Notes under the pieces: model-generated | The model's database searches: none | The model's input: only the letters and a program-made list of their open reading frames with translations | Told to the model about the DNA's origin: nothing | In this document: one piece after another, positions 1,069 to 54,957 of the stretch | Layout: every line of letters starts with the position of its first letter | Numbering within the stretch: the stretch's first letter is position 1 | Program-made: the position numbers and the translations under genes | Assembly: GCF_037042905.1 (NCBI RefSeq) | Contig: NC_087247.1 | Location: 5,270,001-5,334,000 of the forward strand | Length of the DNA stretch: 64,000 nt | Source: Lytechinus pictus | Taxonomy: Eukaryota | Reading direction: 5' to 3'

Positions 1069-2736
1069 ATGGACAGATTGTTTGTCATCGTTCTGTTTGT
1101 TGCTATGGCAACCATTACGACGGCAGCTCCTGGTAAGTCTATATAAAGATTAATGAATTTCTGTCATGGAGAATCATAACAAATTTGACTCTATCTTCTT
1201 GAAACGGCCTGTAATTACTTTACATTCTCCGAGAATGTCAAGTAGTTATAGACCGTTTCAAGACCATTTTTATTATTATCAATCGGTAAGAATATATTCC
1301 GTAACTCACATAATTATTTTGTAGGCCTAAACAGCCCATGGGCCCTCATGGGCCAGCCGTACGCATCTAGTCGCTTGTCTCACCCGAGCTTTTTGTATTA
1401 CCTTGTGATGTCAATATAAGGACAAGTTTTGTTTTCTTCAAATCAGTAGAACCTTTGATGTCCTATATCTGCATTAAAAAGGAAGCCTTATTTTTGTTAA
1501 AATTCCAAAAATGAAAAATCACAATTCCTTTCAAGCCGGGTATCCCTATTGCATAATGAATGTAATTGCATAGAAAGAGAGTTCTCCACGGTGATTCGTT
1601 GTGATGTGTTTACCGATAAATGACCGAATCTTTGAAAAAAATGTAAAAAAGGATGACATGGTTGAGGTTTCAGCTGAGAAATTTCATATACCAGGAGCAT
1701 TTGATTGGTTTACATTCCAAGTTTTAAAAAAGCTAGGTTTCTCATGATTTTTTATTCTTGGCACAAATAATGCCAAAATCCGAAATGTATTCACAAAACC
1801 CAAACTTTGAAATTACATTTAAAATGATTATCCCTACATTTTCTGAATCCACTTCATTTCTTCTTTCCATCGTAATTTTTCACTCATGTAGTTAACCAGA
1901 GCACAAGTGTGGAAGTTAAAGAACCACCGCAGAACATGTCAAGCGGCCAAATAGACACGATAGAGGGACCGAAAGAAGTATCGAGTCGTGAAGGAGAGGA
2001 ACCGAAACCGGTATCGAGTGGTGAACAGGGGAAATCGGAAGAAGTATCGAGCGGTGAAAAGGCGGAACCAAAAGAAATATCGAGTGGTGAAGAAGATGTA
2101 CCGAAAGAGATATCGAGTGGTGAAGAAGATGCGTCGAAAGAAGTGTCGAATGGTGAAGAAGAAAAACCGCAAGAAATATCGAGCGGTGAAGGAGAGGAAC
2201 CAAAAGAAATATCGAGTGGTGAAGGAGAAGATCCGAAAGAAATATCGAGCAATGAAGAAGGGGAACCGAAAGAAGTGTCGAGCGGTGAAGAAGAAGAAGA
2301 GCCGAAAGAAGTATCGAGTGGTGAAGAAGAAAAACCGAAAGAAATGTCGAGCGGTGAAGAAGATGCGTCGAAAGAAGTATCGAGCAATGAAGAAGATGTA
2401 TCAAAAGAAGTATCGAGCGGTGAAGAGGATAAACCGAAAGAAATATCGAGCGGAAATGAAGTTGGAGCTAAGGAAATATCCAATGGTGAAGGGTGGGTTT
2501 CGGAAGAGGTATCGAGTGGGGAGAAAGGGGAACCGAATGAAATATCGAGCGGTGAGGAACGGGAACCGAATGAAATATCGAGCGGTCAAGAACGGGAACC
2601 GAATGAAATATCGAGCGATGAGGGGACTATCATTAAAGACAATGACAAAGGAGATGACGACACTGATGATGACGATACCGATGATGATGATAATGAAACT
2701 GATGATGATGATGACGATGATAATGATGATGATTAG
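1069..2736 (+). CDS. Gene A: secreted Glu/Ser-rich repeat phosphoprotein, phosphodontin-like (~302 aa); join(1069..1132,1892..2736)
   Basis: Exon 1069-1132 encodes signal peptide MDRLFVIVLFVAMATITTAAP followed by G|GTAAGT (phase 1), with an upstream acceptor tgcAG at 1041-1042. Acceptor tgtAG at 1890-1891 restores the frame of ORF 1909..2736 (VNQSTSVEVKEPP...). There are about 20 repeats of 11-12 aa, E(I/V)SSGEEExPK, then a poly-Asp tail and TAG. The repeat matches my recollection of sea urchin tooth phosphodontin (no search run). Confidence 0.85.
1975..2640 (+). repeat. Coding tandem repeat, 33-36 bp unit (GAA RTA TCG AGY GGT GAA ...), ~20 copies
   Basis: Directly visible. It explains the spurious overlapping ORFs in other frames and on the minus strand. 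Confidence 0.95.
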
Positions 2737-5298
2737 GATAATTAGGATGACGGTAATGAAGCTTGAGGCAAATCATCATGTACGTAGGGTTTTGCAATAA
2801 AAAAAGGGATGGAAAATTTCATGTTACACGTACGTATGTAGTACAAGAAAAGAAATGCTGGATTAATGGAGGTGTCTGAAAAATAACTTTTTATTTTTGT
2901 CCCTTAACTTTGAGAGGTTAATCGTAGGACGTACTCTTAAAAATGTTAGTACAAAATTAAACCGATTACATTATACAAGAATATCGATAGATATAGAAGT
3001 GCTTGTCAAGATATATGATTTAATTTTGAATTCACTCGATTTATTTATTATTATTTGTAATTATTTTGTTTCAGTTTTTAATTAATTAATTGTATATCTA
3101 TATTCGCATTTTCGCTTTGCTTTCAATGTTCCTCGCTTATTTGAGTATATTGTCATGAAATATGGCGAATCATTGTTACCGAAATGAAGACTCGAATTGA
3201 TATTCCAATTCATGTCTGATTTAATTCATTATGATCGCTATACCTCCTGTTGTGTTGAATTTGACGGAAGCATGCATTGTTGAACTCAATACACGTTTTC
3301 ATACTAATGTTTCACTCAGTGATGCAAGTCAGAGGACGGCTGAAATTGAATTGAAATGCTAGTGTTATTATATATGTGTACCCTTTTTCGAGGAAATGTG
3401 TTTTTTTACATTACACACTATTGTTGATAGAAATTCGTACCTTTTTTGATAATAAAAATGATTACAACTACCTGAATATAATTTCATTTACTTGAACCGT
3501 TTGTCAGTTTCGTTGGAAAAGGAACGAAACTAGCAGTGAGAGAGAGAGTGAGAGAGAGAGGGGGAGAGAGAGGGGGAGAGAGAGGGGGAGAGAGAGGGGA
3601 AGAGATGGAGGGAGAAAGTGTGCCAGAAAAAAGACGAGAAATAGAGGGAGGGGGTAGATGGATGTTTAGAGGGTAAAGAAGGCTGAAAGAGAGAGTGGTT
3701 GCAACACTCGTCAGAAAAGTTTAACATTCGTTCTTGCTCGCACAAAAAAAAAACCGAATAAAATACACATGTATCAAAATAAGAGGAAAATTGAAGCTTT
3801 CGTTTAATATGCTTTAATGTTATACACCTCCAAATGTCACCATATACGTTTTAAAACTACAACTGTCACCAAAAATGTAACTTAAATGTATAGATAATGT
3901 AGAAATAATTTACCACCCTTTCAAAAATTAATGTGTGTATGCAGACCGAAGAGGAAAAGTAAAGGGCTGTTATCTATCTATATCAGCAAAAAGTAGGGGA
4001 AATGGCTTCACAGTATTTGCCATAACATATTTTATAGATAGCATTTATATATATCACATTTGATTACCTAGGGTTATGCCAATACACAATATTCATAAAC
4101 ATGAAGAAATCATTCCATATAATCCAATTTCAATATATTTATCACTGGTAGTATGTTTACATTAGAATGAGTCAATCGAACATTAAAATGAACATGAGTA
4201 ATCACGAAAAGATGTCCCACTTGTACAGTAAAGCTCTCTCCCAGATTCTGTGACCCAAGTTATGAAACTAATTCAACCATCAATCAAATCAAAATGAAAT
4301 AGGCATTTAATTAATTTGGAACGTATCAACGTTTGTCGGAGTAAGGTAAGTGTCAGAAAGATGGTTTCAAAGGGTTCTTTCTGCACATGTAAATGACCTG
4401 TCAGTCACCAAAAATAAACTCCTCAAAAAAGTTTGGAAATCTGACTTTGATCGATAATCCCTCCTCGGATTTAGTTAATGTCAATGTGTAATTAATATCA
4501 ATAAATAGATAATTTAATTATCTTTAAAATGATACCCTACAAGATATGATTATGGTTCATATGGAGGTGCAGTGCCTTGAAATGTGGGGCAAGGTCAAAA
4601 GTCAAAAGTTGCAAAATTACACAATATTGAAAGTCACTGTTCTTTTTTCCGTGGTGATGAGTGAGTTTCTCAGCGGTTTCTTTTAATCGTTTTCATGCAC
4701 CTTAACATTAACATGCAATCACTCGCACCTCTGCACAAGCAAGCACATAAGAAACAAACAAACATGCATGAGTATTTCAAACCACGACTCAACGGACTAG
4801 ACCTATTAAAGGCTACTATAAGCTAATTGGTCTAACCTAATTGAACGTAAAGTTCTGAATTAACCAGTTCGAAGTTAACCATAGCATTAGTCGGCATTAG
4901 GTATTAGACAGGTCCAGATTTGAGATAAGTTAATGCGCTAGCCTAAGCTAGCCCTAGTCTATCATTCTGTCTTGTCATTAATGGCAGTTTGATAAGTGTT
5001 TAAGAATTGGATCTAGATATAAGGCCTATGTAACTTATATAAGGGTACCGGTAATTTGAGAGTGCTGGTTAATTTGTGGCAACGTGAGCGCTATAGTTAA
5101 CGACGACCACCGACGATTAATTTTGTACGCGCATGCTTACTCTTATTCCGAAGACGCAAGTCATGAATATTCATATTGGAATATTCATATTGGCTTCCAC
5201 AACTGCGGTGGGAAAAATAATTTCGCGAGCGGCGGGGGGTATAATGTAATGCCAAAGTCAGAACATAATGTAATGTGTCTGTCAGTTTTCTTTTCATT

Positions 5299-8200: not shown

Positions 8201-9553
8201 GTGCGCGCGCGTGCTGTAAACTTTGATGAAGGCTACTTCCGTTATTACTTGTCGTAGAAGGTTGATCAAGGTATCAAATTGTTCAGAATTATATTATCGG
8301 TGCATTGGTATGAAAAAAAAAATGGTGATCCTATGTTGCATAGTGCCGTTACGCACGAGAACGTGCGCGTAACCGTGCGCGCCCGCAAATTTTTGAAATG
8401 CTTAAAATGGTCTGATTCATACTCTACTTTGGTCAAAAAGTGATTTTAAGCATTTTAACATTTTTGACGCGCGCGTACGCGCACGTCGTGACCTTTACAT
8501 GACTTTTGATGACATGGACAGTTGACCCTTGACCTGAAGTTAATGTGAAGTAAATATTGTTAATTTTTGATAATTGATAATGAAGATATGATTGATTATG
8601 AGATTTTACAAAATGGCGTCTAGATGACGTCATGATGACCTTTTGACCTTGAACCTGTTTCGTCCAGATGACATGGTAAGTCCCCATATCTGATGATATT
8701 TTGAAGATAATTGATAATGTAGATTTTGAGATTTTACGCTAACAAGAAAAGGGTGGAAAAATAAAAATTAAGAAATAAATAAAAAAGAAAATTCGTACGA
8801 AATTAATAGTTGATCTGTCGATTGACAGATCACCTAATAAATGACTGGTAAACCATAATCATACACAACATCCTATAGCTTTTATGTTTCATCTTAAACC
8901 ATCTAATCTAAGTTCATTTAAGGTTTGCCATATCATATGATGTCCCTCATTTCAAGGCAAACTTAATTATCTATAATATTTCCCCGTATTTTAATGACTG
9001 TTTCAAATTTGTAACCTCTTCATGAATTTAGGCCAAATTTTACAATCAAGCTTGTATATACATATTAATGCTTAAAGGTGAAATTCAAACTTTCATATAA
9101 ATATCATGAAATCAGAATTATTTGAGAAGTATACACTTTTTATTATTTGTAAAAAAAACATGCCATCCTTATAAAAAATAAGTCTCAGCATAATTATCTC
9201 ATTGAATTAGTGACTAAAATCATATTTTGGCATTCTTGGACGATAAAAATTAAGTACAATACATTATTTTAAACTGTAATAAAATGCATAAGAATATGTG
9301 AGAAGATGACGTCATCAACCCGCTTACTGCACACGAGGACATGCATAACTTTTTACCAAAAAATGCAAAACTGAGCTAGTATTTGTTTTTTATTCCTGCT
9401 TCATTTTTTTTACTTTTGATTTTACTCTGTTTATATGCTTAAACCACATGCCTTAACGATTCGCCCTAGCTATGAAAGTTATTAATGAATATTTGACTTA
9501 CCTCCCATTATGCCCATGATCACGAATGCTATCAACAGAAGTGAGCCTTTCAT
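5299..9553 (-). CDS. Secreted Ly6/uPAR (three-finger) domain protein, copy 1 (~127 aa); complement join(9553..9502,7171..7044,5502..5299)
   Basis: Spliced product MKGSLLLIAFVIMGIMG|DFSLALQCYSCENKGDKGESYCLKNLQDEMSPVECDQGVTKCY|ARLLSYINHDTMKAGSVNIERRCKQNGDDCELHDVQIVDGKENVNYSACCIDDKCNDQDMRTIHSEI*. It has 10 Cys, an L-x-C-Y-x-C start and a CCxxxxCN end. GT-AG junctions are in compatible phases (1, 0). A second in-frame acceptor 12 nt further in is possible. No hydrophobic GPI signal. Confidence 0.88.
6544..6754. mobile_element. hAT-like MITE
   Basis: TIR caggggcggatcc...ggatccgccagtg with an imperfect 8-bp TSD (attgattc/attgatta). Confidence 0.7.
7260..8837 (-). mobile_element. Non-autonomous Helitron/Helentron-like element
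   Basis: Absent from duplicate unit 2 (empty site aacaataaa|taaatga), with no TSD. It has a 3' CTAG, a subterminal hairpin aattcgtc-N5-gacgaatt, and 15-bp asymmetric inverted repeats at 7288-7302 and 8824-8838. Confidence 0.75.
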
Positions 9554-9784
9554 GTTTGCTAAACAACTAGATCTGTTAAAACAATATGAGAACATTTTAT
9601 TGGTGTGCTACTAAAAGTTGAATTCAAATACAAATTATCAAATATACTGACTATAATCTCAGTCATAGAAGCATTACGACAGGATGCGTTTTACAAGATG
9701 GAATTTGCAGCTTACCTGGTCTAGGGGAATGTTGAACGGTCACCTTGCGATAAGTCTGACTCTCATAATCCGATCGAGCTATCC

Positions 9785-9792
9785 TATTTATA
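9785..9792 (-). promoter_or_regulatory. Candidate TATA box (TATAAATA) of three-finger gene copy 1, followed by a short non-coding exon with donor at 9715
   Basis: TATAAATA lies ~70 bp upstream of CAG|GTAAG. The acceptor aacAG at 9573-9575 precedes the ATG exon. The arrangement is conserved in copy 2. Confidence 0.6.
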
Positions 9793-17829: not shown

Positions 17830-18369
17830 TTGACAGGAGGAATACTGATGCATTAAATGGACCCAAACTATTGTCAAGCGGTTGGAATTGACAATTATGG
17901 CGCCCTGACCAATCGTTATGGATTTGACGATACATAAGATGGCTGTGATGACAATGAAGTAGATAACTGTGTTGACAATGATTGCCACATCGATGATGAC
18001 AGCGAAGGTAACGGCGATGATGATGCTTGTGATGACGACGTCGGTTGTGATATTGATGACGACAATGATGAAGATGATGATGACGATGATGACGATGATG
18101 ATTGCGATGATGATGATTGTGATGATGACAATGCTGATGATGATTGTGATGATGACGATTGTGATAATGACGTTGAATGTGATGACGATGACGGTAGAGA
18201 TGACACGGCTACTGATGATGGTGATGATGATTGTAATGATGGCGATAATTGTGATAATGACGGTGATGATGACGGCAAGGGTGACGATTGCGCAGATGAC
18301 GATGGTTGTGCATCTTTCACCGACGACGATGCCGATGATGGTCCTAGTAAACTTCTCACCCTATTTTAA
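17830..18369 (+). pseudogene. Orphan Asp/Cys-rich acidic exon, probably a disabled family member
   Basis: Frame 17938-18369 reads DGCDDNEVDNCVDNDCHIDDDSEGNGDDDACDDDVGC...DDCDDDDCDD...GPSKLLTLF* (143 aa, 14 Cys by my count). It is preceded in frame by TAA (17935-17937) and MDPNYCQAVGIDNYGALTNRYGFDDT. No signal-peptide exon was found upstream. Confidence 0.55.
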
Positions 18370-24336: not shown

Positions 24337-24567
24337 GTTTGCTAAACAACTAGATCTGTTAAAACAATATGAGAATTTTTTTTGGTGTGCTACTAAAAGT
24401 TGAATTCAAATACAAATTATCAAATATACTGACTATAATCTCAGTCATAGAAGCATTACGACAGGATGCGTTTTTACAAGATGGAATTTGCAGCTCACCT
24501 GGTCTCGGGGAATGTTGAACGGTCACCTTGCGATAAGTCTGACTCTCATAATCCGATCGAGCTATCC

Positions 24568-28974: not shown

Positions 28975-31900
28975 ATGTCTCGTTTTTGGATGATGCTAAT
29001 GTCTGTTCTTGTTCTCATCACAATCGCAACGGCTGCTCCAAGTAAGTATAGGCTGACTTAAAAAAAAACACGAAATAAGCCAAACATGCCAATCGTCTCA
29101 CTGGCGATGTTGGGAAAAAAAACTGTACAAGATGCTATAACTTTCCCGTCTCACCTGTTATACACGTTCAGCATGTTCAGAAAAAAATGCAAAGGAATAT
29201 AATTTATACTTTCAGAAGGTTATTACACTATACCCCTGATAAGGGGCGTCGCTACTGGGGGCAGAGGCAACTGTTTCCTATGTTTTCTGTAAGTAGCAAA
29301 AACGGAGAAAAGGGGATAAAAAAAAGAAAAGTAAGGGAAAGCCGGAAGAAAAATGAGTGGTATAAAAATGATAGCTATGAGTCGTGTAACTCGATATTAC
29401 CCTAGTGATACTTACTGATAAAAGAATTTGTCACGTTTAGATCATCTCACCCCCTTCCAAAACATACTGTTGTCGCCCAAACCCCTGATTTCAACGCAAT
29501 TTCTGTGCCATGAGCTATGACCATGCGCAAGAGTATCGTTTTGCTCAAACGAATTATGCAAAATATAATTGAAAAGGATGCCGGTCAAAGAAACAATTGC
29601 TAAATAGGTGTCCATTGGTGAAATAGTCAATCATGTCAATAGAAAATAATATTATGGTATATACTAAATAACATGTTATAAGTTGGCCTTCAGCGTGTTA
29701 ACATTTTTTTTTCATATTGAGATTGATTATTTCTTTGGGAGGGGAGGGCACGTCCCCCTTTAATACCCGAAATCACCACCTATGCGGGCGCTATAATCTT
29801 ATCCCCACAAGTCTTCAAAAGAACAACAAAAATGGCACACGAACCAAATGAAATTATGGCCCATTGGAGAACAAGCTCATCATAACTTAACTGCTAACGC
29901 GCTGATCTGTTAAAGGACAAGTCCACCCCAACAAAAAAATTTGAATAAAAAAAGAAAAATCCAACAAGCATAACATTAAACATTTCATCAAAATCTGATG
30001 TAAAATAAGACAGTTATGACATTTCAAAGTTTCGCTTAATTTCACAAAACAGTTGTATGGAAATCCTGGTCGGTATGCAAACGAGGAGACTGATGACGTC
30101 ATCCACTCACTATTTCTTTTGTATTTTATTATATGAAATATGAAATATTCTAAATTTCTCCTCATTGTCAAGTGAAACCGCGATTAATTCCTCCCTATAC
30201 ACGTGGAATTTGCATTCTTTAATACTATATGGTTCAGTCAAGTCGGTCCCTACGTTCAAATCTGTAAACAATTGAAATATTGTATAATTCAAACAATAAA
30301 AAACAAAAGAAATAGTGAGTGATGGACATCATCGACTGACTCGTTTGCATGTCACCGAATTGTTCAAATCACTGTTTTGTGAAAAATAAGCGAAACTTTA
30401 AAATACCATAACTTTCTAATTTTACATCCGATTTTGATGAAATTTTCGGTGTTATGCTAGTTTGATTTTTCTCTATTTATTCAAATCAACATTTTGCTGG
30501 GGTGGTCACACCGACAGAACTTTGCTGGAGCGGTCCTTAATGGTAGGGAGAGGGGGTCGAATTTCGACAACGCTCGTCATCGCGCGCAAATGGGGAAAAA
30601 AACGAAAACACGGGTGTTGCCTTAGCCGTGCATCGCTGAAGCCGGCGTTGCTTTAGCGATTGTTTAGTGGTGACACCTCCATACCAACGCCAAACCGAAG
30701 TTCATCACCGCAATGGATCGCGGCTTCAACGCCCGACACCGTTCCAGCAATCCCGTGTTCGCTCGTAAAACGCTTACAACCGTTCCACCAAAGTTTGTGC
30801 AACGTTTAATCACCGCAGCGGTCGTCCAGTTTTCAATATTTCTGCGTTGGCCTAGCGGACCCTAGCGTCCACGAACTTCCGTCTAGCAGTGCCAAACTTT
30901 TACTGGACGTTGTTGGAGCGGTGGTGAACTTTGCTGGAGCAGAAAATTGTCCGCTCCTCACCGCTTGCAATATTTTGTGCAGCTCAAAACTTTCGGAGCG
31001 GTAGGAGGGTCATCAGCGGTGACCTGATGTTAAACGGTGGTGAACGGTAACGAGCGGTGATGAAAAATTTTCACCGCTCCAGGAATGTTCTGGCGTTGTG
31101 ACCACTACTTTAAAGAGATTAAAAATACCACTTTCTCTTTTTTCCCTAGCTGAGCGGTTAAGACGAGATGACAGCTCAGCATGTGATGAAGATGAATGCG
31201 ATGGGGAAGAGGACGGTGATAGTGGAGATTGCGGAGAGGATTGTGATGAACTTCAAGAGGAAGATGATGATAGTGGCGGTGATGAGGACGAAAATGATGA
31301 CGATGACGACTGCGACAGTTGCGGTAAATTTTCTTCCGTTGGTATATCGCATGAAAGCGTGTAGTCATGGTGGTATTTACGAGGATTTAGACAAACTGAT
31401 GATTTGTTTGCGTAAAATATTTTTTATTGTTCAGAAAAAGCCTACCCTATCATGATTCGCATAGACACGAAAAATGAATTCTACGTCCTACCTGATTTGG
31501 TGCATACACATTCACATAATCTAGTCGTTAATCGGAATAGTGGCATTCACTTTTATGGGATTAATATGCTTTAATCTGAGTTCAGAATGGGAATGTTTTC
31601 TATTTTCCTTCAATAAAAAAATCACTGACGTTGTAAGCTATTATAAATCTTGGCTAAATGTGTTTACATTTTACTTCTCCGTATAAAGGATTCTTAAAGA
31701 TATTTTTTCAAATTTCATTTTTGTTCATTTAAGGAGATAGAAAGAAGAGAGACGAAGAAGATGAATGCGAAGATGATGAAAGTTGTGAAGATGACGAAGA
31801 AGACGGAGATGGTAAGAATATATATATATATATTTATTAATAAATTCTACCGATAAAGTCACAGTGCTTTCAATATTTTATATCATTTTGCAAATTATAT

Positions 31901-34900
31901 ACCATCATGGTTTGGCACAGTAGGATCTTAAACATGATAAATGACGTTAAAACAGACACTCCCGAAACACAACACAGCAAAGAACATAATCAAACGAAGA
32001 GTTATATTACCTTTCGACTCTACTGCCATTTAGATTTAATTCAAACCTTCATTTGGTCACCCTGGTTAACATAGGTTGCTGTTAATTGGCCAATTATATT
32101 TCATCAAATTTGGATGTAGAATAAGGAAGCTATAATTTTTTTTTGCTGATTTTTCACAAGACAGTTATATGCGCAATACATTCAGTGGTATGCAAATGAG
32201 AGAGCCGATGATGTCACTCACTATGTTTGTATTTTATTGGAAGGGAGGGGCAACTATTCCAAATAGGGGTTCATTATTTAGAGGGGGTGGGTTAATTCAC
32301 AACATTTCCGTGGCACTCGGGGCGTAAGTATAAGTTTTCCAGGGGTCAAATATAGGTGTATATTTATTCTCGAAAAAAAACCTCTCAAAAGCGAGGGAAG
32401 GAAGCAACCGAGATTAACACAATGTTACTCTGGCATTCTCTGCTCATCTATGGTCACAAAATATTAATGGATTGATGTATATTATATTGCCATTTCAGGA
32501 GACAGAAAGAGGAGAGACGAAGGAGACTTGGAAGATGATAGCAGTCCTGAAAATGACGGTAATCCTTATCTTCTTACTACTTCTCAATCTAACTATGAAT
32601 GCTTTTTGCAGTCCTAAGACTGTAATATAAACTTATTAAACATATTAGAATGAAATATATATTCTAAATGAGCCATATGTAGTCTGGCTGCCATTAACTC
32701 CAAAGAAGTATTTGAAAATCAATGAAAAGGTTCATAACATTTAGCATGGTTGTATTGCTAATTATATCTGACTGTTAGCATCGTCAACTACTAATTATGT
32801 TTTTACTTTATCATTACTTGCTTTTTACTTGCTTTTTTGCGTCATCATAATCCTTGCTTCTGACGGGCACGTGCACAATACAACCACATAATCTTTGTTA
32901 ATGTTATTTGTAAATATAATTTTAATACCATAATTGAATAATAGTATATTAATGAATGGCAACTTTAATGTTTCAGGCGACAGAAAGAGGAGAGACGAAG
33001 GTGACTTGGAAGATGATAGCAGTCCTGAAGATGACGGTAATTATTCTTTTCCCACTTACTCCTACCAATCTAAATCTGAACTCTACTTGCTATCCTCCAG
33101 CTTCATACCCTGTAAAGTAATATATATATATGTATATAAACTCCTCAAAAAAAGTTTGGAAAACTGACTTTGATCGATAATCCCTCCTCGGTTTTAGTGA
33201 AAATTAATGTGTGATGGATACCAATGAATAGATCATTTAATTTTCTTTAAAATTATACCATACATGATATGATTATGGTTCACATGGAGGTGCAGTGCCC
33301 TGAAATGTGGGGCAAGGTCAAAATTCAAAAGTTGCAAAATGACACAATATTGGAAGTCACTGTTCTTTTTTTCCGTGGTGACGAGTGGGTTTCAGCGGTT
33401 TCTTTTGTTTTCATGCACCTACATTAAAAATGGAATCAAACACTCCTCTGCACAAGCAAACACATAACAGACATGCATGGGTATTTCATACCACGACTGA
33501 AACCATGTTATATCACTGAAACATCACTACATAAACCACAACAAAACTTAAAAAATGAAGCAGGGGCTTGATTTGAATGGATTTTCATGTCTATTGACAC
33601 AGACAAAAAAAAATCATGTTCTTTATGACTATTTCTTCATGACTATTTCTGCTCGTTTTGCAGCTTTTTAATTTAGACCTCATCCAACACTTTTGAATCC
33701 TGCTCTTTTCGTGATGGCATGATCATAACAAGCATGGTATCATTTTAAAGAGAATTGAATCATCTTTAGAATGATATGAAATATGCATTGTGTGAAATTG
33801 GGAGTTGGGAGAAATTAATGGCCAAACTCAGATTTCCAAACTTTTTTTGAGGGGTTTATATAGTCTAATTGACCTATGTTATATATTAACTGCCAATAAC
33901 TCCAAAGCAGCCATCATGGCCATTGAAAATGTAAAAGTTCCTGTAACATTTCCCTTCCCTGGTTTTCTCAATGTTTATGACTGCCAGCATCGTCAACTAC
34001 TAATTCTGTCCTTGCTTGATTATTATTTTGTTTTGTGACTCCTTTGCCTCTGAGGGGCGGAACGATATATCTCTGCTAACATTATTGATATTTACAATTT
34101 TACTGCAAATCGATAGTGAAAATAATAATAATGATTAATTATATTTCCCTTTAGGAGACAGAAAAAGAAGAGACGAAGGCGACTTAGAAGATGATAGCAG
34201 TCCTGAAGATGACGGTAATCATTTTACTCTTACCCCTCCCCTCAATCTAAATACGAGATCAACTTTCACCCCCCCCCCCGACTGGAATCATTTAACTTAT
34301 GCCTTATTAAGTTAAAATTCCATGTTCTAAATGACTTCTGAATAATATTGACTGCCACGAGCTCTCAAAGAGTGAATTAAAATCAATTTAAACCTTTTTT
34401 TGTAATATTGGGCTCGGTTGGTTCGTGAATTTATCAGACTCTTTAAAATCAACAGCAATTATTTATAATTGCTATTAAATTGTCAATGTATTTTTTTCAG
34501 TGTCACCTATGCATCTTATGGACACATGGCAATAATATAATCTCCAGAGCGTTTTAATGTTACATTTTGTTATGTCATTTGATAGTAATGGAATCAATAG
34601 ATGTTATATTCCTATTTCAGGAGGCAGAAAGAGGAGAGACGAAGGAGATTTAGGAGATGATAGCAGTCCTGAAGATGACAAGGATTACGGTAATCCTTCT
34701 CTACTAACTATTACGGGGTGTTGCAAGTCTTTTTCGGGTCCCTAAATCAGTCATAAGTGTTGCAATTAATTGCAAATTCATGATTGATTGCTGATCTGTT
34801 TCTTGAAACATGGAGTGTAATCTCATTTGCTACAGTGAAAATTCCTTTATCAGTTGTAAAATTGCTACAGAATATTTGCAATCGATTGCAAATATTTTCT

Positions 34901-36391
34901 TGCAACACCCCCTTAGTCCTTCCAACATGTCCAATCTGAACCTGAATGGGACTTTGCAATCCTTCAACCTATAAGCTATGACACATTTACATTCTCGATA
35001 AATTTTGAATATATTGGCCGCCGTGAACTCCGTGTGAATGAATAAAAATAAATTAAACTTCATGTAAATTTTACTTGGCCGGTGTTTCCCAATGTTATTT
35101 GACTGTTATCATCAACTACTAATTTTGTTCATACATTATTACTACTTTGTTCGGTGTCGCCTGTGCCTCTAGTGGGCAAGTGTATTAGATGAAAATCAAA
35201 TGAAATATACAGTATGTATATATTTTTAATACTACTTGAATAGTAATGGATTTATGACAATCGTATTCCTGTTTCAGGGGACAGAAAGAGGAGAGACGAA
35301 GGCGACTTAGAAGATGATAGCAGTCCTGAAGATGACGGTAATTCTACTCCGTTTATTCCTCCAAATCCAAATGCTACTTGCAATCCACCAAATATAAGTT
35401 GGCGGATTTTTTAATCTTTTTTACAATTTTTTAAGTTAAAAATTTTTATTGACTGCCATGAATTATGAAAATGTAATTGAAAATCAAATCAAATTTCCTA
35501 CTATTTAGTCCGCTTAATTTGCAAATCGTATCAGACTGTTATCAGATTATCGGTATTAACTCTGGATTGTTGTTCATGTTTCTTTAGTATTGCTCTTTGT
35601 TTAGTTCACCTATGATTATGGTTGGCACCCGTGCAGTTACACACCACTGTGTTCGTTAGTGTTGTATACCATTTATATATTTTTTATTTTTTATTAATGA
35701 TAATTTTCATCGCATTTCAGGAGACAGAAAGAGGAGAGACGAAGGAGACTTGGAAGATGACAGCAGTCCTGAAGATGACGGTAATCATTCTCCTCTTATT
35801 CCTCCAAATCTCAATCCGAATGCAACTTGCAATGCTTCAATATGTTATGACATATTCATCTTCAGATTTGTATAAATTGACTGCCGTAAATTCCGCAAAA
35901 CAGTAACGAAAATCAAACAATTCCTCTAAAATTTGATGTTTTTTTTCAGACTGTTAACTCAGTGCATTTATATACTCTCAGTGACATGTCACATTCAGTT
36001 GATCAATCCTGAAGCTCCTTTAGATTTTTAAATCCAATTTTCGGAACTTTGCCAATCCGGTTTAAGCGCCATTGCTCTACTTTTAGCAAAAGCTATTAAC
36101 TCACTGGATTGACATTGCTTCAGTGTAGCATAAGATATGCATTGATGCATCTTCACATTTCTCAATGAAATACATGCCGGATTTTTTCTTTGACTGTCGT
36201 ATGAGATGAATGCAAAGTGGAATTTAGAATATTTGGAAATGAATTCAGAAATTAAATGTTATCATGGTGATATAAATACAACATAATTTTTTACTCGGTA
36301 ATTTAAATGCACAAGTTTCTATTTAATCTGTAAATGTCTTTATAATAACATTATTTTTCATATTTCTCATCTTGCAGGAGACAGAAAATGA
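28975..36391 (+). CDS. Gene B: secreted acidic-peptide polyprotein with repeated RKRR convertase sites (~233 aa); join(28975..29041,31150..31323,31734..31811,32499..32558,32977..33036,34155..34214,34621..34689,35278..35337,35721..35780,36378..36391)
   Basis: Signal peptide MSRFWMMLMSVLVLITIATAAP, then TERLRR-DDSSACDEDEC...DCDSC, GDRKKR-DEEDECEDDESCEDDEEDGD, six exons of consensus GDRKRRDEGDLEDDSSPEDD, and a terminal GDRK*. Every junction is AG/GT, phase 1, and every internal exon length is a multiple of 3 (174,78,60,60,60,69,60,60). Confidence 0.88.
29914..30505. mobile_element. TTAA-flanked Kolobok-like element (family also at 44173-44563)
   Basis: TTAA-aggacaagtccacc start and inverted arms. 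The right end runs into the next element. Confidence 0.7.
30500..31105. mobile_element. GC-rich MITE
   Basis: Imperfect TIR gtggtcacaccgacagaac / gttctggcgttgtgaccac, with internal gctggagcgg repeats. Confidence 0.6.
32460..35960 (+). repeat. Tandemly duplicated exon-plus-intron units (six 60-69 nt micro-exons)
   Basis: The exons are near-identical. The introns keep decayed shared motifs (GTAAT donor, gactgcc, gactgtt, catcgtcaactactaatt). Confidence 0.9.
33138..33858. mobile_element. Tc1/mariner-like MITE in an intron of gene B
   Basis: TA-aactcctcaaaaaaagtttggaaa...tttccaaactttttttgaggggtt-TA, inserted in a TA-rich stretch. It accounts for the longer intron between micro-exons. Confidence 0.8.
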
Positions 36392-44038: not shown

Positions 44039-47000
44039 ATGAACCGCCTGTGGATGTCGCTGGCTCTTCTTCTCACGCTGTTGGCCCTGTCAAACGCAGC
44101 ACCAGGTAGGGCCTATATAACGCATAATGAGTAAATCAGTCGGGGCCAAATAGAAGGAGTGGGGTTATTTAAAGGACAAGTCCACCGTAACACAAAGTTG
44201 ATTTGAAAAAAGAGAAAAATCCAACAAGCATAACACTGAAAATTTCATTAAAAACGGATGCAACAAATAAGAAGTTTCGCTTAATTTCACAAGATAGTTA
44301 TATGCACATCCTGGTCGTTATGCAAATGAGGGAACCGATGACACCACTCACTCACTATTTCTTTTGTATTTTAGTGTATGAAATATTTAAATTTTCTCCC
44401 CAGAGACTAAATTGTGCATATAACTATTTTGTGAAAAATAAGCGAGATTTAACAATGTCATAACTATCTCATTTTACATCCGATTTTGATGAAATTTTCA
44501 GTAATATGCTTGTCTGATTTTCTTTATTGATTCAAGTAATTTTTCTGGAGGTGGATTTGACCTTTAAGAGGGTGTTGTCTCAACAATGATGCACATTTTT
44601 ACTGTAGTAAACATTGAACTGGCACTGCATGATGGACAATAACTTTCCGTATTAGTCTGAGGAAAATGTGATAAAAAGTTCGGATCCACTATGTAGATGA
44701 CGCAGGTTTTATAATTTTTCTTCCACAAACTGACCTTCGGGCTGTTGATAATGTTGACTGATATTATTTAGAAGTAAGGTAGTAATGGCTGTTTGTTCAG
44801 CTTATGAAATTCAAACAAGTTGAAATCCCAGTACCATTAAGATTATAGTTCATTATTATGTACAAATACATTGCAACAAGATAAGTGAAATCCGAATTAG
44901 AATCTTATTCGCAAATAATGGCATAAAACAATTTATTTCCCGCTTCTCTTTTAAATCAGCGGAAAGAATTCGAAGAAGTAGCAGCAGTAGCAGCAGCAGC
45001 GAGGACTGTGACGGGTGCGATTGTGATGGGGATTGTGATGGCGATGGTGGTGGAGACTGTGGCGGTGATTGCGGGGGAGATGGTGATGGCGGTGATGGTG
45101 ATTGTGGCGGAGACTGTGGGGGCGATGGGGGTGACGGTGGGGGTGATGGTGGAGATGGTGGTAGTGGTGGTGGCGATGGCGATGGCGATGGGGATTGCGG
45201 CGATGGTGGCTGTAATGGTGATGGTGGTGACGGTGATTGTGGTGGTGACGGCGGTGATTGTGGTGGGGATGGTGATGGGGGTGGGGATGGGGATGGTGGC
45301 TGCGATGGCGGTGACTGTGATGGTGGTGATGGTGATGGCAGTGGTGGTAATGGTGGCTGTGATGGTGGCGACTGTGATGGCGGAGGATGTGATGGAGGAG
45401 GATGTGACAGCAGTGATAGTGACAGCGATAGTGACAGTGGAAGTGACAGCTGCGACAGTAGCTCTGAAGGGTGCGACAGTTCAGACTCCGATTCCGACTC
45501 TGATTCCGACTCTGATTCTGATTCCGGCTCGGACAGCAGCGAGGAAGGAGGATGCGGTGGTGGTGGAGATGGTGGTGGAAATGGTGGCGGCGGAGATGGT
45601 GGTGGAAATGGTGGCGGAGGTGACTGTGGTGGTACCAATGCGATATCCGTCGCAGCTCCAGACGTACAGGTAGTGGAAGTGGAAAAACCAGTGTATATCC
45701 CAGTACCGGTTCCTGGTGGTGATGACGGCGACGATGATGGAGGAGATGATGACGGAGGTGATGATGGCGGTGATGACGGTGGTGATGATGGAGGAGATAA
45801 TGGCGGTGATGACGGTGGTGATGATGGTGGCGATTATGGTGGTGATGACTATGGAGGGGATGACGATGGTGGTGATGATGGTGGTGACTACTACGGTGGA
45901 GATGATGGTGGAGACGATGGTGGAGATGATGTTGGTGGAGATGATGATGGTGGAGATGATGTTGGTGGAGATGATGATGGTGGAGATGATGATAATGGCG
46001 GTGATGACGATGGTGATGGAGGTGATTGTATTGCATTGGGAGGTGGTCCTGGATGTGGCGCAATGCAAGCTGGTGATCTTAACTCCCCAGGTAAGAAAAT
46101 AAGTCTCTGAATGTGATCGTAAATGATTTTCTCATGACTAAATATTAATATCTCATTAGGTCTAAATAGAAAATGCATGATATTTCATTAAACAATTAAT
46201 CTTAAACTGTATTGATAAAGGATCATATTTTATTATTGACATCATTTCCTGATCTAAAATTGCAAATGCATAATGAGGCACACAATTTGTATCAGATAAA
46301 TCAGGTTTATGTAGTATGAACTCCACTGATCGTTTTCGTATCGTATCACATATTAAATATAATTTCCTCCACAATGTCATGCCTATTCCACGGGACCGTG
46401 ACATGACAAACTTTTATTCTCAATCATATACATGTATACTAAAAAGACAACCGCTATTTCAATATCTGATCGACTTATTGTGGTTCGGATCTGTACATTG
46501 ATATAAATTAACCTTTTCCTATAGATGCTGTCATGAGCTCACCCTGTTCTGAATGTCCTCTCTTCATCTCCCGTACTGATGCCGTTTGCGGATCAGATGG
46601 AGTCACATACGATAACCTATGCGAATTACGCCATGCTGCATGCCAACTAGGAGACAAATCAATTCGAGTCGCCAGTGAAGGCATTTGTGCAGGTACGAAC
46701 TAAGCAAGGCTTGTTGCGCAGTCACATTTCGCCTACGGTGGCCGTCCGGTGAGTCAAAACAGCCGTTTTTTAATTTTTGGAACAGGTTCCTGAAATCCGT
46801 AAAATGGCTGTTTTTCGACTCCCCGTGTGGACATCGTAATGGAAAAGTGACTGCAGCATTAGTACCGCGGGTAAAAGGAAAATTCTGACCTTGAAATAAT
46901 CAAAATGGTCTAATATTGACTGACATCTATTCAGAGATCGATGATTCTACACGGCTGAGAGGGCTTTTCAAACTGCGACGTGGCGCCACCGTGACAACCC

Positions 47001-49665: not shown

Positions 49666-52600
49666 TTACTGAAACTGATTAGCCAGGTTGATTGTCTTTG
49701 GCGATACTGTTAGGGGGAAACAAAAGAAAACAAGGGAGGAAAATTATATTTCATTAAATTATCTACGAAGTTTAGATCATTGGTATTCATTTTACAGTGA
49801 GTACGTTGTAAGTTCAATGTTCCTATAGTGAATATTAAAAAAAACAACAATTATCACGATAAAAAATGACCTAACTAACTTTGCTTTTGAGGCAAGGGTG
49901 AGGATTTAAAAAAAAGAAAAAAGAAGCTTACTGCGGTTACGACTACAGATGGCGCTGTTAAAACATTGGTTGGCACAAAATATGATCACAAATTCGTTGA
50001 ATATAATCCGCACGGAGAGGATCACCCAGTATCTGTCATCGGTTAATCGTCCGTGGGTGTGAATCCCGATAGCATCGACTCATAAATACAAACTTCCTCG
50101 AAAATAATCCCTGAAAATTCTCAAATGACATCCCACTAGAGCGGACGAAAGAGGTGAAATAGATTTGATATGGAGAGGCAAATTAAGGGTACAATTTGAG
50201 GCCGCTTTCAGCTGCCGTTCATTAAATATAAATGTATTTTACTTGATCCTACAACTATGTAGTTTGACTTAGCTCTGAAAAAATTCCCTCCACATTAGAC
50301 GAAAATTTAGAAAGCCTATAAAAATTAATAAGAACAATTTATAAGAAAAGAAATAAAAAGAAACACAGACATGACATATCGGTATGCAACAAATCCCTTC
50401 CACTGAGAACATCCTTCCTTGAACCTCCCCCCCTAAAAAAAAAAACAGTACCCACAGTGCGTGCCACAGTGTATTCATAATTTAGAACACAATGTGAAAT
50501 CTTCTTTACACTATTAATTTGATCATTTAAATAGTATGAAGCACATATTGACATAGTTGATCATGTGAACACGCTGTGATAAGTCTCACTGTCGAGGTGT
50601 CCACAGTGTGAACATATCTTCACTCTGTTGAAATTGAGCACTTCAACAGTGTGAATAATATTTTCATATAGCCAGCTATGTAAACACAGTGATCACACTT
50701 GTTTTGTTTTCTAGTAGGAATAGCTTTGATGTATGTATAGATTTTGATTTTTAACGATTAATCTATTTATATTTTTTTTTTTGGTTTAATTGCCAACTGT
50801 GTGCCAAAAACATAATTTTTTTTTTATTCACAGATAACATGACAATAAATACAAATATGAACCTATTTATTATACTGTAGGACTTGGTATAAAACTCCTA
50901 TGATATTTTCACATCAGTTGCATATCATTGTCCTGAATTTCCCCAAAACTTACAATTGCAACTGCCCATCTTTGCTCGCTTAAGACTTGGGTCATTCGTT
51001 CTGCATGCAGCCAACTTAAGGTGACATAGGCTTTTGTAGGTTCGATTGTTTGTGCCGCACACACGCTGCGCTCGAGGGGTGTGGAATGGGCAATCGGCGC
51101 AGATGGGACTCGCTAATCTGCCAGTGCCTGCTGGAGAGTACCAGAAAAAAGGGCAATTCCATGAAATATTTTGTATGTCCGATTTTTTTTTCATTTTTAC
51201 TTGAAATTCAAGAACTGCTCATACTATGATTATTCGAGAGCATTACAAATATCAAATGAAAAAAAAGAAGAAAAGTACATGTCAAAAAAGACCCATAGAT
51301 AGTTGGACCTACTCACTAGTACTTTATCGAATTGCCCAAGAAATGTTGTTGTTTTGTTGTCGTTTCACGAGCGCTCTACTTTTAAACCAATTCGATCATG
51401 ACAATTTTTACAAGATGGGAGTGATAGCTAAACGAAGTTATTACTACGACCGGATGACGTCATTTTCTGAACGTATCAAGCTGTCCAAAATTTGAAGCGC
51501 CTCCTTCAAGATATCTTGGTCGTAGGTACGATCTAGAATATCGACCTTTTTCGTTCTACTTCCGTTGTACTTAAAACATATATAGCTTTTATGAATATTT
51601 ACCATTTCCGGGCGGTGCATTCCGTTGTTCCTTTGGACAGTCATTTCCACTGCAGTCCTCCTCGTTATCTTTGTCTTCTTCGTCTCCGTTGTCTTCCTCA
51701 TCGCCATTGTCCTCCTCGTCTTTCTTATCCCCATCTTCCTTGTCCTCCTCGTCATTGTCTGCATCTTCCTCCTCGTCTGCGTTGTCTTTGTCTTCCTCGT
51801 CCGCATCATTGTCCTTGTCTTCTTCATCCTTGTCTTCTTTGTCTTTATCTTCTTCATCTTTATCTTCTTCATCTTGATCTTCTTCATCATTGTCCTCTTC
51901 ATCCTCCTGATCCTCCTCATCTTCTTCGTCCACCGCTGAGGACGCATCGTGGGGACCTGGAGCATGAGGAGCGAAAGGGGCAGCGGGGGCGTAAGGAACA
52001 CCCGGGACAGGAGCGTGCGGGGCGTATGGTGCATGGGGTGCAAGAGGTGCGTTAGGAAAACCGGGTGCAGGAGCAGCAGCTCCTAGAACTCCAGCACCTG
52101 ATGGGGCAGCAAAGCCACAGCCGTCTTCGTCGCTGCTGTCAGATCCACCACAGCCGGAATCGGAGTCGCCAGTGGGAGCATAACCTACAGGAGCATAGGC
52201 ACCGGGTGCTGCTGGAGCATATCCGACAGGTGCGGCAGGAGCATATCCACCAGGGGCAGCTGGAGCATAACCGACTGGAGCTGCTGGAGCGTAACCTGCG
52301 TGACCACCGATGCCAGCCTCTAGTCCTGAATAATGAAAGTTAAAAGAAAGAGCATTGCTATTTTCTGCTTATATTGTTGGGTTTGGGAATGTGTTTTAGT
52401 GTGAAGGTGTACTAGGCTTATATACGTTCGTATGTGACAAACTCATGAGCACTAACCACAAAAATGTAAGAGTATGTGGATGTGTGTGTATGTGGGAGGC
52501 CTACAAAACGTTGAGTTTCATGACTGTGAATAAAACATGAGTGGGTGATACAACAAAGACAAATTGTTAATAATAGTTTAGAAAACATGAAATATCAAAA

Positions 52601-53702
52601 TGCAAATTACCATGATAATGCTCTCCGCTGTCACTGTCGTCTTGGTCTACGCCGTAGCCTACTGCGCCCCCTACAGGAGCATAACCGACACCTGGAGCAG
52701 CTGGAGCGAAACCCACACCTGGAGCATATCCAGGAGCCACTGGAGCATGGGGTGCAGGAGCATATCCTAAATCTGGAGCATAACCTGTCTCTCCACTTGT
52801 GTCACCATGAACTCCTCCCGCTGGGGGATGAGGAGCAAAAGCAGGAGCCGCTGGAGCGTGGGGTGCGGGAGCATATCCTACACCTGGGGCGAAAGCTGTC
52901 TCTCCACTTGTGCCACCATGAACTCCTCCCGCAGGAGGATGAGGAGCATATGCAGGAGCTAATGGAGCATGGGGTGCGGGAGCATATCCTCCAGATGCCG
53001 GGGCATATCCTGCTCCAGGGGATGGAGCGTGCCCATATCCAGTTTCTCCGCTTGTGACACCCTCCGTTGGAGCATGGGGTGCGTAAGGTACAACTGGAGC
53101 ACGAGGGGCGGCGGGTGCATGTGGAGCGGCGGGAACAGGCGGGGCAAATGGTACAGCTGGAGCATGAGGGGCGTAACCTCCCTCTCCATGGCATGGCCCT
53201 GAATGCGCTACTTGTACTCCTCCATTTCCATTTGTGTCATCGTCATCATCATCGACATCGCACGCGTCATTGTAGGTAACACCATTATTGCCGCATACGG
53301 TACCGCTGACTCCTCTTGTACATTTGTTGGAATCTGTCGTGGCGTAAGAGATACGGCTCATTATTTGGATATTAAAGCAAAGGATAAGGATTTTATTTGG
53401 CTGGAAAGTTGAAGAAATATGAAGGCCAATTAATTGTTCAAGCTATTTTCAGTTGAATGAAAGTATAGACTTCATAACTTATTCCATGATTAACGTTAGT
53501 GTGTATCTAATATGTGATATAGCATATGCACTGTATCTATCTTTTTGAGGCCAAAAAACCCCACATGCCTGGCTGTCTTAATGAATCATATATCATGAAG
53601 AATATTGTGCAAATGGAATATTCACTTACGTGGCGCTGCATGTGTAAAACCTGTGAGACACAAGACAGCGAGAAGAACGGTTAGAAACCTGGCGGATTCC
53701 AT
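49666..53702 (-). CDS. Gene D: secreted Ala/Pro-rich acidic protein with a degenerate N-terminal and a canonical C-terminal Kazal domain (~578 aa); complement join(53702..53630,53333..52611,52325..51603,51130..50954,49706..49666)
   Basis: Signal peptide MESARFLTVLLAVLCLTGFTHAAP, then HSNKCTRGVSGTVCGNNGVTYNDAC...VAHSGPC, GYAP/APHAP repeats and an Asp/Glu tract. The Kazal exon reads CADCPFHTPRAQRVCGTNNRTYKSLCHLKLAACRTNDPSLKRAKMGSC. Terminal exon LSPKTINLANQFQ*. All junctions are phase 1 with internal exons of 723, 723 and 177 nt. It resembles the Ala/Pro-rich Kazal-bearing proteins I recall from sea urchin tooth matrix. Confidence 0.88.
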
Positions 53703-54863
53703 TTTAGAGATCTAGGAAATACATGAAATAAGAATATGATGAAGAAAATGACACAATAACACATTCGAACACATCTCTAAGAATCATTCACTTTATAGAT
53801 GAGATAAGAAACTAAACATTAATCACTAACACAAAATATTGTTGCTTTATGATATTTATAAAGCAACTGCTATAATTCTGTATTTTTGTGGTGTAACTAT
53901 ACTTTCCAAACACATTTTGCGCGTGAATGATGGAATATAAGAAACACAGAATGAAATTTATTTTGTGACAAGACAGTACAGAGCGTTTTGTGAGTGATAT
54001 GATGAATGCGTGATGAACTGATAACTGGTCAGAATATTTCACGATTGTTATAATGGTCTATTTATAATCAAACAATATTTGATCGAAAACAATGCATGCT
54101 GTATTTATGGATATAATGTACAGTGATGATTGATTGTTGATCAGTTGATACTATAGTATAGTCAGAAATATTATTTGATTTATTCATCAATAAACTTTCA
54201 AATGAACCGTGCTACAAACATTGTCATGCCATTGTAATGAATATTTGCATTTGCACACATCCAATTACAGTACTCCTAGCAATTCCTTTAACAACAATGA
54301 AAATGCGAAATAGAATAAATAAAGTACTTCATTAAATATTAAATCACCAAGCCTAAATTCTTTCAAATATAAGTTCAGAAAGTTTCTCCAAGATAGCCAT
54401 TGAATTAACTCTTCATCACTCAAACTCTTGTATTTTTTTAAAAATCAAACATGATTGTCATGTGATGTACACTTTTCCATCTCTTTCATTTTCCTGTTGA
54501 TCAGCGATGTCCGTTTGTGAGTACTGGGGCTGGATTCTAAAGACCTTTAATCTATCTTTTTCTTATTTCCTTTTCTATTTTAATTTCCCCCTATTTCTTT
54601 TTAATTTAACTGGTTTATGCTCAAGTTGTTATTTTGATTTGTATATGCTATGTAACTACAAGAATATAGGAGGCTGCACTCTACAAGCTCCGCTTTTTAG
54701 CAGCCTCCTCCATTTCCAACCTGATATGTAATAATCTTGAATATAATTTTTGTACAGGGATACTTGAAATATGTTTTGTTATTTGTATGTCAAAATGTAC
54801 AAAACAAACTGTAATTGTTGAAAATGGAAATAAACGATATGAAATGAAACGAAATATATTTAC

Positions 54864-54957
54864 CTTTTTGCTTCGTATGCAACCCTATTCCAGTGCTATA
54901 TCCTGTGGTGAGCTCTTATTAGCAACTGATGAAACTGGTCCCAAATTCATATTTATA
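54864..54957 (-). promoter_or_regulatory. Candidate TATA box, initiator and non-coding exon 1 of gene D
   Basis: Minus-strand TATAAATA at 54957-54950, ATCAGT at ~54930-54925, donor AAG|GTAAAT at 54864/54863, and acceptor cctAG just upstream of 53711. Confidence 0.65.

Follow-up and report, generated by a model that had tools for sequence, protein, structure and literature searches.

We analyzed a stretch of 64,000 nucleotides (nt) from the sea urchin Lytechinus pictus (hereafter the window; C3:5270001-5334000, from an 811-Mb genome), in which a six-frame reading gave three gene starts on the plus strand and a fourth on the minus strand, belonging to four genes for secreted acidic proteins that we call A, B, C and D. 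They appear to form a single family that has diversified at its own locus, much as the genes for vertebrate bone and enamel proteins did. The window likely represents the middle of a tandem cluster of paralogues encoding secreted, strongly acidic, low-complexity proteins of the tooth and skeletal matrix, in which one leader module has been kept and the body has evolved freely. The gene models and their signal-peptide exons are as follows:

1069-2736, plus strand: gene A, 302 amino acids, one coding intron (leader exon joined to 1892-2736)
1069..1132, plus strand: signal exon of gene A, 64 coding nt, MDRLFVIVLFVAMATITTAAP + G, donor GTAAGT
28975-36391, plus strand: gene B, 233 amino acids, nine coding introns
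28975..29041, plus strand: signal exon of gene B, 67 nt, MSRFWMMLMSVLVLITIATAAP + A, donor GTAAGT
44039-47654, plus strand: gene C, 464 amino acids, three coding introns
44039..44105, plus strand: signal exon of gene C, 67 nt, MNRLWMSLALLLTLLALSNAAP + G, donor GTAGGG
53702-49666, minus strand: gene D, 578 amino acids, four coding introns, last exon predicted
53630..53702, minus strand: signal exon of gene D, 73 nt, MESARFLTVLLAVLCLTGFTHAAP + C, donor GTAAGT

The original prediction, made from the window alone, held that the four genes share a signal exon of 64 to 73 nt that ends in Ala-Ala-Pro plus one base, and this is what we found (64, 67, 67 and 73 nt; TTAAP+G in A, ATAAP+A in B, SNAAP+G in C, THAAP+C in D). 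The similar starts that it listed were also read, as MDRLFV in A, MSRFWM in B and MNRLWM in C; D begins with MESARF. In all four genes a polypyrimidine tract and an AG precede the ATG by 9-26 nt, the acceptor predicted in gene A lying 26 nt upstream. The coding introns are, as had been claimed, exclusively in phase 1 (17/17 in the models: one in A, nine in B, three in C and four in D), and all internal exons are multiples of three and phase 1-1 symmetric. Exons of this kind can grow, be duplicated or exchanged, and be skipped or lost, with the reading frame kept intact.

A leader of this type could be a common property of secreted genes, an outcome that the original prediction had itself listed as refuting. 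We scanned the whole genome with leader patterns, using the reversed pattern as control. The pattern GCNGCNCCNNGTAAGT (Ala-Ala-Pro, one base, GTAAGT) had 16 matches, against 7 for the control. Four of the 16 were preceded by a signal peptide, namely those of A, B, D and a new gene, E, all at C3:5.247-5.324 Mb. Looser scans (ATG 45-66 nt upstream; M-x-R start with x-Ala-Pro end; Gly/Ala-Ala-Pro end) likewise returned genuine signal exons only in the C3 locus. Genome-wide, all real signal exons that end in AAP plus one nucleotide before GTRAG or GTAGG, or that read M-x-R..xAP plus one nucleotide before GTAAG, fall there; the remaining matches, about as frequent as in the control, were repeats or noise out of frame. 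Because the genuine signal exons of all these scans lie in the C3 locus, the leader exon of A-D is locus-specific and not generic to secreted genes; a generic AAP leader was rejected as a candidate explanation.

The scans, together with the flanks of the window (sampled as alternate 10-kb pieces), identified further members of the cluster:

C3:5213264: gene F, leader MNRSWLFLVVIVAMVAGVFSAP ending ..VFSAP, then ERxRR/GRVRR propeptide and Gly/Asp/Cys-rich body
C3:5234954: gene G, leader ending ..AASLP, then ERxRR/GRVRR propeptide and Gly/Asp/Cys-rich body
C3:5246957, minus strand: gene E, leader MSRSWLTLAILFLVATLVVAAP ending ..VVAAP, then ERxRR/GRVRR propeptide and Gly/Asp/Cys-rich body
C3:5258433-5258499, plus strand: gene K, leader MNRIWIALTILLIVSTLATCAP ending ..ATCAP, unusual donor GTTTGT, then GRVRR and a long poly-Gly/Cys body
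C3:5339967 and 5355150: genes H and I, leaders ending ..SNGAP, then Kazal-like and Ala/Pro-rich bodies
C3:5402889: gene J, leader exon of 67 nt, phase 1, ending ..QAMPR, then Kazal-like and Ala/Pro-rich body

The cluster is larger than first seen. Within 142 kb there are at least nine leaders with x-(A/L)-P plus one base at their end. A signal exon of 64-73 nt with this ending, confined to this locus, was found in A-I and K; J carries a variant with an AMP-R ending. Leader-exon genes span at least C3:5.21-5.40 Mb, and related Kazal exons extend out to 5.52 Mb. The continuation AAP-x-ER(L/I)RR, which had been reported for B and C, reads T-ERLRR in B and A-ERIRR in C, and the propeptide (ERxRR/GRVRR) is common to B, C, E, F, G and K.

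We also built a DNA profile (nhmmer) from the leaders of B, C, E, F and G and searched 253 kb of locus and decoy sequence with it, the decoy loci being picked for the same 16-nt tail. The held-out leader of gene A was recovered at E=1e-4 and that of K at E=5e-5. The leaders of A, B and C thus appear to share statistically detectable homology, and on this sequence comparison their paralogy is well supported.

The leader is not confined to L. pictus. Published Strongylocentrotus purpuratus tooth proteins (PMC2614417) carry AAP/GAP leader ends, which indicates that the leader is conserved across species. The leader of Glean3:17590 ends ..LSNGAP-YSNKC. Glean3:17587 reads ..SAAAP-REKR-DDNGNGCDNGG, with an acidic Cys/Gly stretch after REKR and then Ala/Pro-rich blocks, a hybrid which shows that forms intermediate between the C and D types exist. 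The fused model Glean3:17588 has an internal start, MNILRSAVILMLVFSASLAAP-RSPRDSCD; fused and consecutively numbered models show that the genes are in tandem in S. purpuratus too. Peptides from the tooth matrix were identified by mass spectrometry (MS) for Glean3:17587-17590 and 22278 (PMC2614417). As a side observation, Gly/Asp repeats such as those of K, read in other frames, give acidic Val-rich peptides like the N-terminus of Glean3:17588, which may be mis-framed.

The proteins of the window are close, but not identical, to published S. purpuratus tooth proteins, as had been anticipated. Gene A consists of its leader exon and a single further exon:

1892..2736, plus strand: last exon of gene A, with phase-1 acceptor, repeats, poly-Asp tail and stop

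Its body has 20 repeats of the (E/P)(I/V/M)SSGE..PK type, with the pattern (E/P)(I/V/M)S(S/N)x(E/Q/N) and an ESSGE-type unit of 33 nt. It carries 22 S-x-E sites and ends in the tail DNDKGDDDTDDDDTDDDDNETDDDDDDDNDDD; the computed isoelectric point (pI) is 4.05, the floor of the calculator. The published phosphodontin peptide EISSGEGEEPK (PMC2830187) occurs in it verbatim. Many EISSGEGEQPK-type repeats of 11-12 residues after a secretion signal are the published mark of phosphodontin (PMC2830187), and gene A is, judging by its sequence, the orthologue of this protein, which was found in S. purpuratus tooth matrix. The features common to gene A and S. purpuratus phosphodontin (Glean3:18919, PMC2830187; Mann, Poustka and Mann 2010) are the signal peptide, the EISSGEGEEPK-type repeats of 11-12 residues, which number about 20 in gene A and 35 in S. 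purpuratus, a C-terminus rich in Asp and a very low pI. Phosphodontin is known as an abundant and heavily phosphorylated tooth-matrix protein; gene A has the 22 S-x-E sites. Gene A is also represented in RNA: run X12 contains 0.91 of the sampled words of its stretch, and runs X1-X4 about half.

Gene C is the representative in the window of the Gly/Asp/Cys-rich type, of which there are at least six paralogues (C, E, F, G, K and a further copy near 5.225 Mb). Besides the signal exon, it has these coding exons:

44960..46090, plus strand: exon 2 of gene C, 1131 nt, phase 1-1, donor at 46090 seen in the X12 RNA contig
46525..46692, plus strand: Kazal exon of gene C, six Cys, phase 1-1, Pfam Kazal_2 at 45.4 bits
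47626..47654, plus strand: coding part of the last exon of gene C, (A)SLVQAVAP and stop, nine residues counting the split codon

Exon 2 encodes, in order, A-ERIRR, eight consecutive Ser residues, Gly/Asp/Cys repeats, (Ser-Asp)n, the conserved central Val/Pro motif AAPDVQVVEVEKPVYIPVPVP and (GGDD)n. The 3' untranslated region (UTR) of the last exon extends to at least 48097. A spliced RNA contig from run X12 covers the last three exons, with the joints 46090|46525 and 46692|47626 at GT..AG borders, and confirms two of the three introns, the Kazal exon and the short last exon. X12 behaves as RNA, since the rest of the gene C intron space is without depth in it. The signal exon is not clearly covered by X12 RNA, and X12 has no depth at 43200-43399, where the untranslated first exon of C was predicted. 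One repeat family occupies part of the first coding introns of both C (44194-44560) and B (29910-30505). Its summed contig word depth is about 20,000-39,000 in three contig runs, so it is very abundant or highly transcribed genome-wide.

Gene B is a derivative of the C type in which a string of very short exons follows the propeptide exon:

31150..31323, plus strand: exon 2 of gene B, phase 1-1, with the furin-type site T-ERLRR, then an Asp/Glu/Cys-rich stretch
31734-31811, plus strand: 78-nt exon of gene B, the first of the array 31734..36391
32499-32558, 32977-33036, 34155-34214, 34621-34689, 35278-35337 and 35721-35780, plus strand: six mini-exons of gene B, phase 1-1
36378-36391, plus strand: last exon of gene B, GDRK and stop

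Five of the six mini-exons measure 60 nt and one 69 nt, and each codes for G-DRKRR-DEGDLEDDSSPEDD. The protein has eight furin-type sites in all.

Gene D, on the opposite strand, is an Ala/Pro-rich protein with two Kazal regions, and its model contains 17% Ala, 14% Pro and 13% Gly:

52611..53333, minus strand: exon 2 of gene D, 723 nt, phase 1-1, four-Cys Kazal-like domain (SNKCTRGVSGTVCGNNGVTYNDAC..GPC), Pfam Kazal_2 at 23.7 bits
51603..52325, minus strand: exon 3 of gene D, 723 nt, phase 1-1, Ala/Pro-rich blocks, then DEED/KDEED repeats, ending ..CSGNDCPKEQRNAPPGN
50954..51130, minus strand: C-terminal Kazal exon of gene D, six Cys, phase 1-1, Pfam Kazal_2 at 39.6 bits
49666..49706, minus strand: predicted coding part of the last exon of gene D, xSPKTINLANQFQ and stop, 13 residues, strong polypyrimidine acceptor

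The Pfam cut-off for Kazal domains (PF07648 / PF00050) was 22.8 bits. In exon 2 the Kazal-like domain is followed by alternating Ala/Pro-rich and acidic blocks. Exons 2 and 3 are both exactly 723 nt long, which may reflect an internal exon duplication. The last exon was located by its acceptor and by its likeness to the S. purpuratus C-terminal peptide, the predicted C-terminus resembling the MS-verified ASLKKVNLFNE; a search by similarity to the last exon of gene C did not find it. As far as its sequence tells, gene D is orthologous to the Ala/Pro-rich Kazal proteins that Mann 2008 (PMC2614417) found in the tooth matrix of S. purpuratus. Among these Ala/Pro-rich as well as acidic Gly-rich Kazal proteins (Glean3:17587-17590 and 22278; PMC2614417), gene D matches the second half of Glean3:22278. 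Exon 2 is near-identical to Glean3:22278 and 17590, with about 43/47 residues by eye in the N-terminal Kazal-like domain of 22278; exon 3 matches the C-terminal region of 22278, and both have a DEED-repeat tail. The paralogues H and I match Glean3:17590, and J matches Glean3:17589 (PMC2614417). Protein database searches with the second exons of genes A and D gave no match, the low-complexity sequence having probably swamped the word filter.

Genes C and D had been described as both ending with a Kazal exon and a tiny terminal exon, and this holds, spliced in RNA for C and with the last exon predicted for D. The gene C Kazal exon matches, in order, three C-type paralogues, two loci outside the cluster, and the minus-strand Kazal exons of the cluster, including that of D. 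Reciprocally, the best non-self matches of the C-terminal Kazal exon of D in the whole genome are the four C-type Kazal exons, and on this comparison the link between the C and D Kazal exons appears well supported. The two types also have elements confined to the locus. The C-type central motif (APEIHYQVVEKPIYIPVPVP and variants) was found genome-wide in this locus only, and the N-terminal four-Cys Kazal domain of D has five copies genome-wide, all at C3:5.32-5.42 Mb. Outside the cluster, Kazal exons at C2:17855372-17855533 and C3:13230017-13230157 show 54% and 50% identity to the C-type Kazal, nearer to it than most Kazal exons of the cluster; these two may be scattered members of the family or its closest outgroups. 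A further Kazal match outside the cluster lies at C14:9.16 Mb.

Taken together, the models suggest a common layout: a short untranslated exon (predicted), an exon with 9-26 nt of 5'UTR and the signal peptide, often starting M-x-R, and then phase 1-1 exons. By change of these last exons the body would have become a series of 33-nt ESSGE repeats with a poly-Asp tail in A, a string of duplicated 60-nt exons in B, Gly/Asp/Cys, Ser-Asp and GGDD repeats with a Kazal exon in C, and a Kazal-like domain, Ala/Pro-rich and acidic blocks and a Kazal exon in D. From the motifs, signal peptidase would cut before Ala-Pro, and a furin-type convertase would remove the eight-residue propeptide AP-x-ER(L/I)RR in B and C and would cut B at each RKRR to release acidic DEGDLEDDSSPEDD-type peptides. 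A Fam20C-type kinase would phosphorylate the S-x-E sites; a Fam20C orthologue is reported from the urchin tooth by PMC3416761, citing Mann 2010. The poly-acidic and phospho-Ser stretches may bind calcium or Mg-calcite, and the Kazal domains may serve as protease inhibitors or as matrix anchors.

The neighbourhood of the four genes contains the following additional features:

28353, plus strand: candidate TATA box of gene B, a prediction
43193, plus strand: candidate TATA-initiator (TATA-Inr) of gene C, a prediction
54957, minus strand: candidate TATA-Inr of gene D, a prediction
3741-11458 and 19408-26163: 7.7-kb segmental duplication, 85-97% identical, offset about 15.7 kb
9502-9553 and 24285-24336, minus strand: signal exons of two copies of a Ly6/uPAR-like secreted gene, with Cys-rich exons at 6948-7196 and 23282-23560
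17939..18369, plus strand: orphan exon A2, open, Asp/Cys-rich (DGCDDNEVDNC...), with phase-1-compatible acceptor

The Ly6/uPAR-like gene (weak Pfam UPAR_LY6, E=0.029) is interleaved with the acidic genes. Its promoter, too, is of the TATA-Inr type, its 5'UTR contains an intron and its signal exon is in phase 1, but the leader ends in Gly or Ala, not Ala-Pro. The TATA box and untranslated first exon, originally counted as part of the shared blueprint, did not hold up in that role: they are candidates only, the same layout occurs in these unrelated genes, and we rejected both, along with phase 1, as family markers. Orphan exon A2 belongs to the second copy of the ~15.7-kb tandem duplication, where its position corresponds to that of gene A's poly-Asp tail. 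We did not find a signal exon for it upstream. It could be a pseudogene remnant or, because its phase would fit the gene A leader, an alternative 3' exon joined to a leader far away. Positions 1-390 of the window belong to a high-copy interspersed repeat with at least 40 near-full-length copies (89-92% identity, on many contigs), often adjoined by an inverted partial copy. A tRNA scan of the window found none.

Several observations weigh against a single family of matrix genes. The bodies of A-D, described as unrelated in the original prediction, have no alignable sequence beyond low-complexity acidity, and what ties gene A to the family is solely the leader exon together with its location. 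A phase-1 intron behind the signal peptide is a common feature of secreted animal genes in general, and since the Ly6-like neighbour has a TATA box, a 5'UTR intron and phase 1 as well, these carry no family signal. The signal-exon profile, which had been proposed as a check, bore out A and K and gave weak scores for D, H and I: these three reach E values of 0.15-0.5 against the C-type profile and are its three top non-training matches, just above the 16-nt-tail decoys. The C-terminal Kazal exon of D has no match in its closest paralogues, H and I. The S. purpuratus C-terminus supported by MS lacks it as well: there the peptides EEGNTRPNASLK and KVNLFNE join exon 3 of the D orthologue directly to the last exon. 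Because these peptides bridge the two exons, the Kazal exon of D may be a cassette exon or specific to L. pictus, and skipped or absent in S. purpuratus. Finally, the RNA runs carry no tissue information, and co-expression of the cluster is not uniform, since X1-X4 contain part of gene A and are not among the runs listed for the C-D stretch.

Beyond the tandem cluster itself, we put forward tentatively, as a real possibility, that most or all of the tooth-specific acidic matrix proteins of urchins derive from one leader-bearing ancestor, probably with a Kazal domain, which radiated within a single locus of over 300 kb through expansion and swapping of phase-1 exons, as the echinoderms' own, independent counterpart to the SCPP radiation of vertebrates. 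The set would comprise phosphodontin, the Ala/Pro-rich Kazal proteins, the Gly/Asp/Cys-rich hyperacidic proteins and the furin-processed acidic phosphopeptide polyprotein. A single signal-peptide/Kazal ancestor had been part of the original prediction. The leader homology of A, B and C and the Kazal link between C and D agree with it; the lack of a Kazal exon in A and B, and of a C-terminal Kazal match in H and I, does not.

An alternative is a mosaic origin, in which exon shuffling or gene conversion carried a mobile leader exon, and independently a Kazal exon, into otherwise unrelated acidic genes nearby, so that common descent would be limited to these modules. The unalignable bodies of A-D would fit such a history, and all the exons are of the phase 1-1 class, which shuffles freely. 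The C-terminal Kazal of D is nearest to those of the C type, yet the nearest paralogues of D show none; C and D lie tail to tail with their Kazal exons facing each other, and B keeps just the first two exons of a C-type gene. Whole-gene duplication is nevertheless clear within both the C type (C, E, F, G, K and the paralogue near 5.225 Mb) and the D type (D, H and I), and the 7.7-kb segmental duplication shows that blocks are actively duplicated here. Dissimilar bodies are moreover expected under duplication too, because low-complexity sequence quickly loses alignability. We consider a mosaic origin unlikely.

It is also rather improbable, in our view, that within a real cluster B and C are not mineral-matrix proteins and share no more than ancestry with the tooth proteins, being instead precursors from which acidic peptides are secreted for some other function, such as signalling or defence. 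The eight furin-type sites of B do give it the layout of a prohormone, proteins of the B and C types do not appear in the tooth proteomes as far as the available parts of PMC2830187 and PMC2614417 go, and X1-X4 contain part of gene A and are not listed for the C-D stretch. However, tryptic proteomics would miss both, because mature C has 8 Lys+Arg in about 440 residues and the B peptides lose theirs on processing. The poly-Asp, Ser-Asp and S-x-E composition is typical of mineral-binding proteins, B and C are flanked by proven tooth-matrix genes, and C is transcribed in X12, the run with the strongest gene A signal. Least credible by far is coincidence or convergence among unrelated genes, with the AAP end reflecting a signal-peptidase or N-terminal Ala-Pro preference and the phase a general rule of secreted proteins: phase-1 leaders, TATA boxes and 5'UTR introns are indeed generic, as the Ly6-like neighbour illustrates, and signal peptides are compositionally constrained, but the scans of the 811 Mb gave no further gene with a leader of this kind, at least nine occur within 142 kb with the variant J further on, the profile found the held-out leader of A, and the same leader ends recur in S. 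purpuratus family members.

We did not find a description of the cluster, the shared leader, the shared ancestry or a phosphodontin-Kazal link in the literature searched (not all journals), in line with the suggestion that the common ancestry may be undescribed. PMC2830187 does not discuss the gene structure of phosphodontin, its neighbours or its relation to other tooth proteins. PMC2614417, in the part available, presents the five proteins as one group, and the shared leader, the tandem locus, the link to phosphodontin and the Gly/Asp/Cys-rich genes are not noted there. Phosphodontin would thus be newly tied to the Kazal and Ala/Pro proteins, which the available parts of PMC2830187 and PMC2614417 treat as unrelated. 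The leader exon offers a marker for matrix genes that homology search misses on account of their repetitive bodies, and the locus nominates the products of B and C as new candidate regulators of Mg-calcite tooth formation. If the proposed radiation is true, it would be a second, independent SCPP-like case, with another intron phase and another mineral, pointing to a repeatable route to biomineral proteins.

Among known systems, the sea-urchin spicule-matrix (SM) and MSP130 clusters are likewise tandem echinoid biomineralisation genes with fast-evolving low-complexity repeats. The SM proteins differ in having C-type lectin domains and basic or neutral repeats, without this leader and without Kazal domains. 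The comparison with SM and MSP130 draws on established knowledge and passing mentions in papers.

The SCPP genes of vertebrates are the textbook case of a mineral-matrix toolkit that arose by tandem duplication of one secretory gene. Like the locus of A-D, the SCPP cluster, which derives from SPARCL1, consists of tandem genes for secreted, acidic, disordered mineral-matrix proteins. Both have a conserved leader, with an untranslated exon (predicted here) followed by a signal-peptide exon, one uniform intron phase, bodies diverged past alignment, S-x-E motifs of the Fam20C type, and a Kazal-containing relative or ancestor. The differences are equally clear. The two share no sequence homology, the mineral is Mg-calcite here and apatite for SCPP, and Kazal exons are kept in many members here, whereas the SPARC domains were lost from SCPPs. 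To our knowledge, the furin-type propeptides and the exon-per-peptide polyprotein of gene B have no SCPP counterpart. The likeness to SCPP genes originally proposed stands for the leader, the cluster and the S-x-E motifs; it fails for the rule that defines SCPP genes, phase 0, all 17 introns here being in phase 1. The locus is best regarded as an analogue of the SCPP cluster and not a member of it, the likeness being one of design only.

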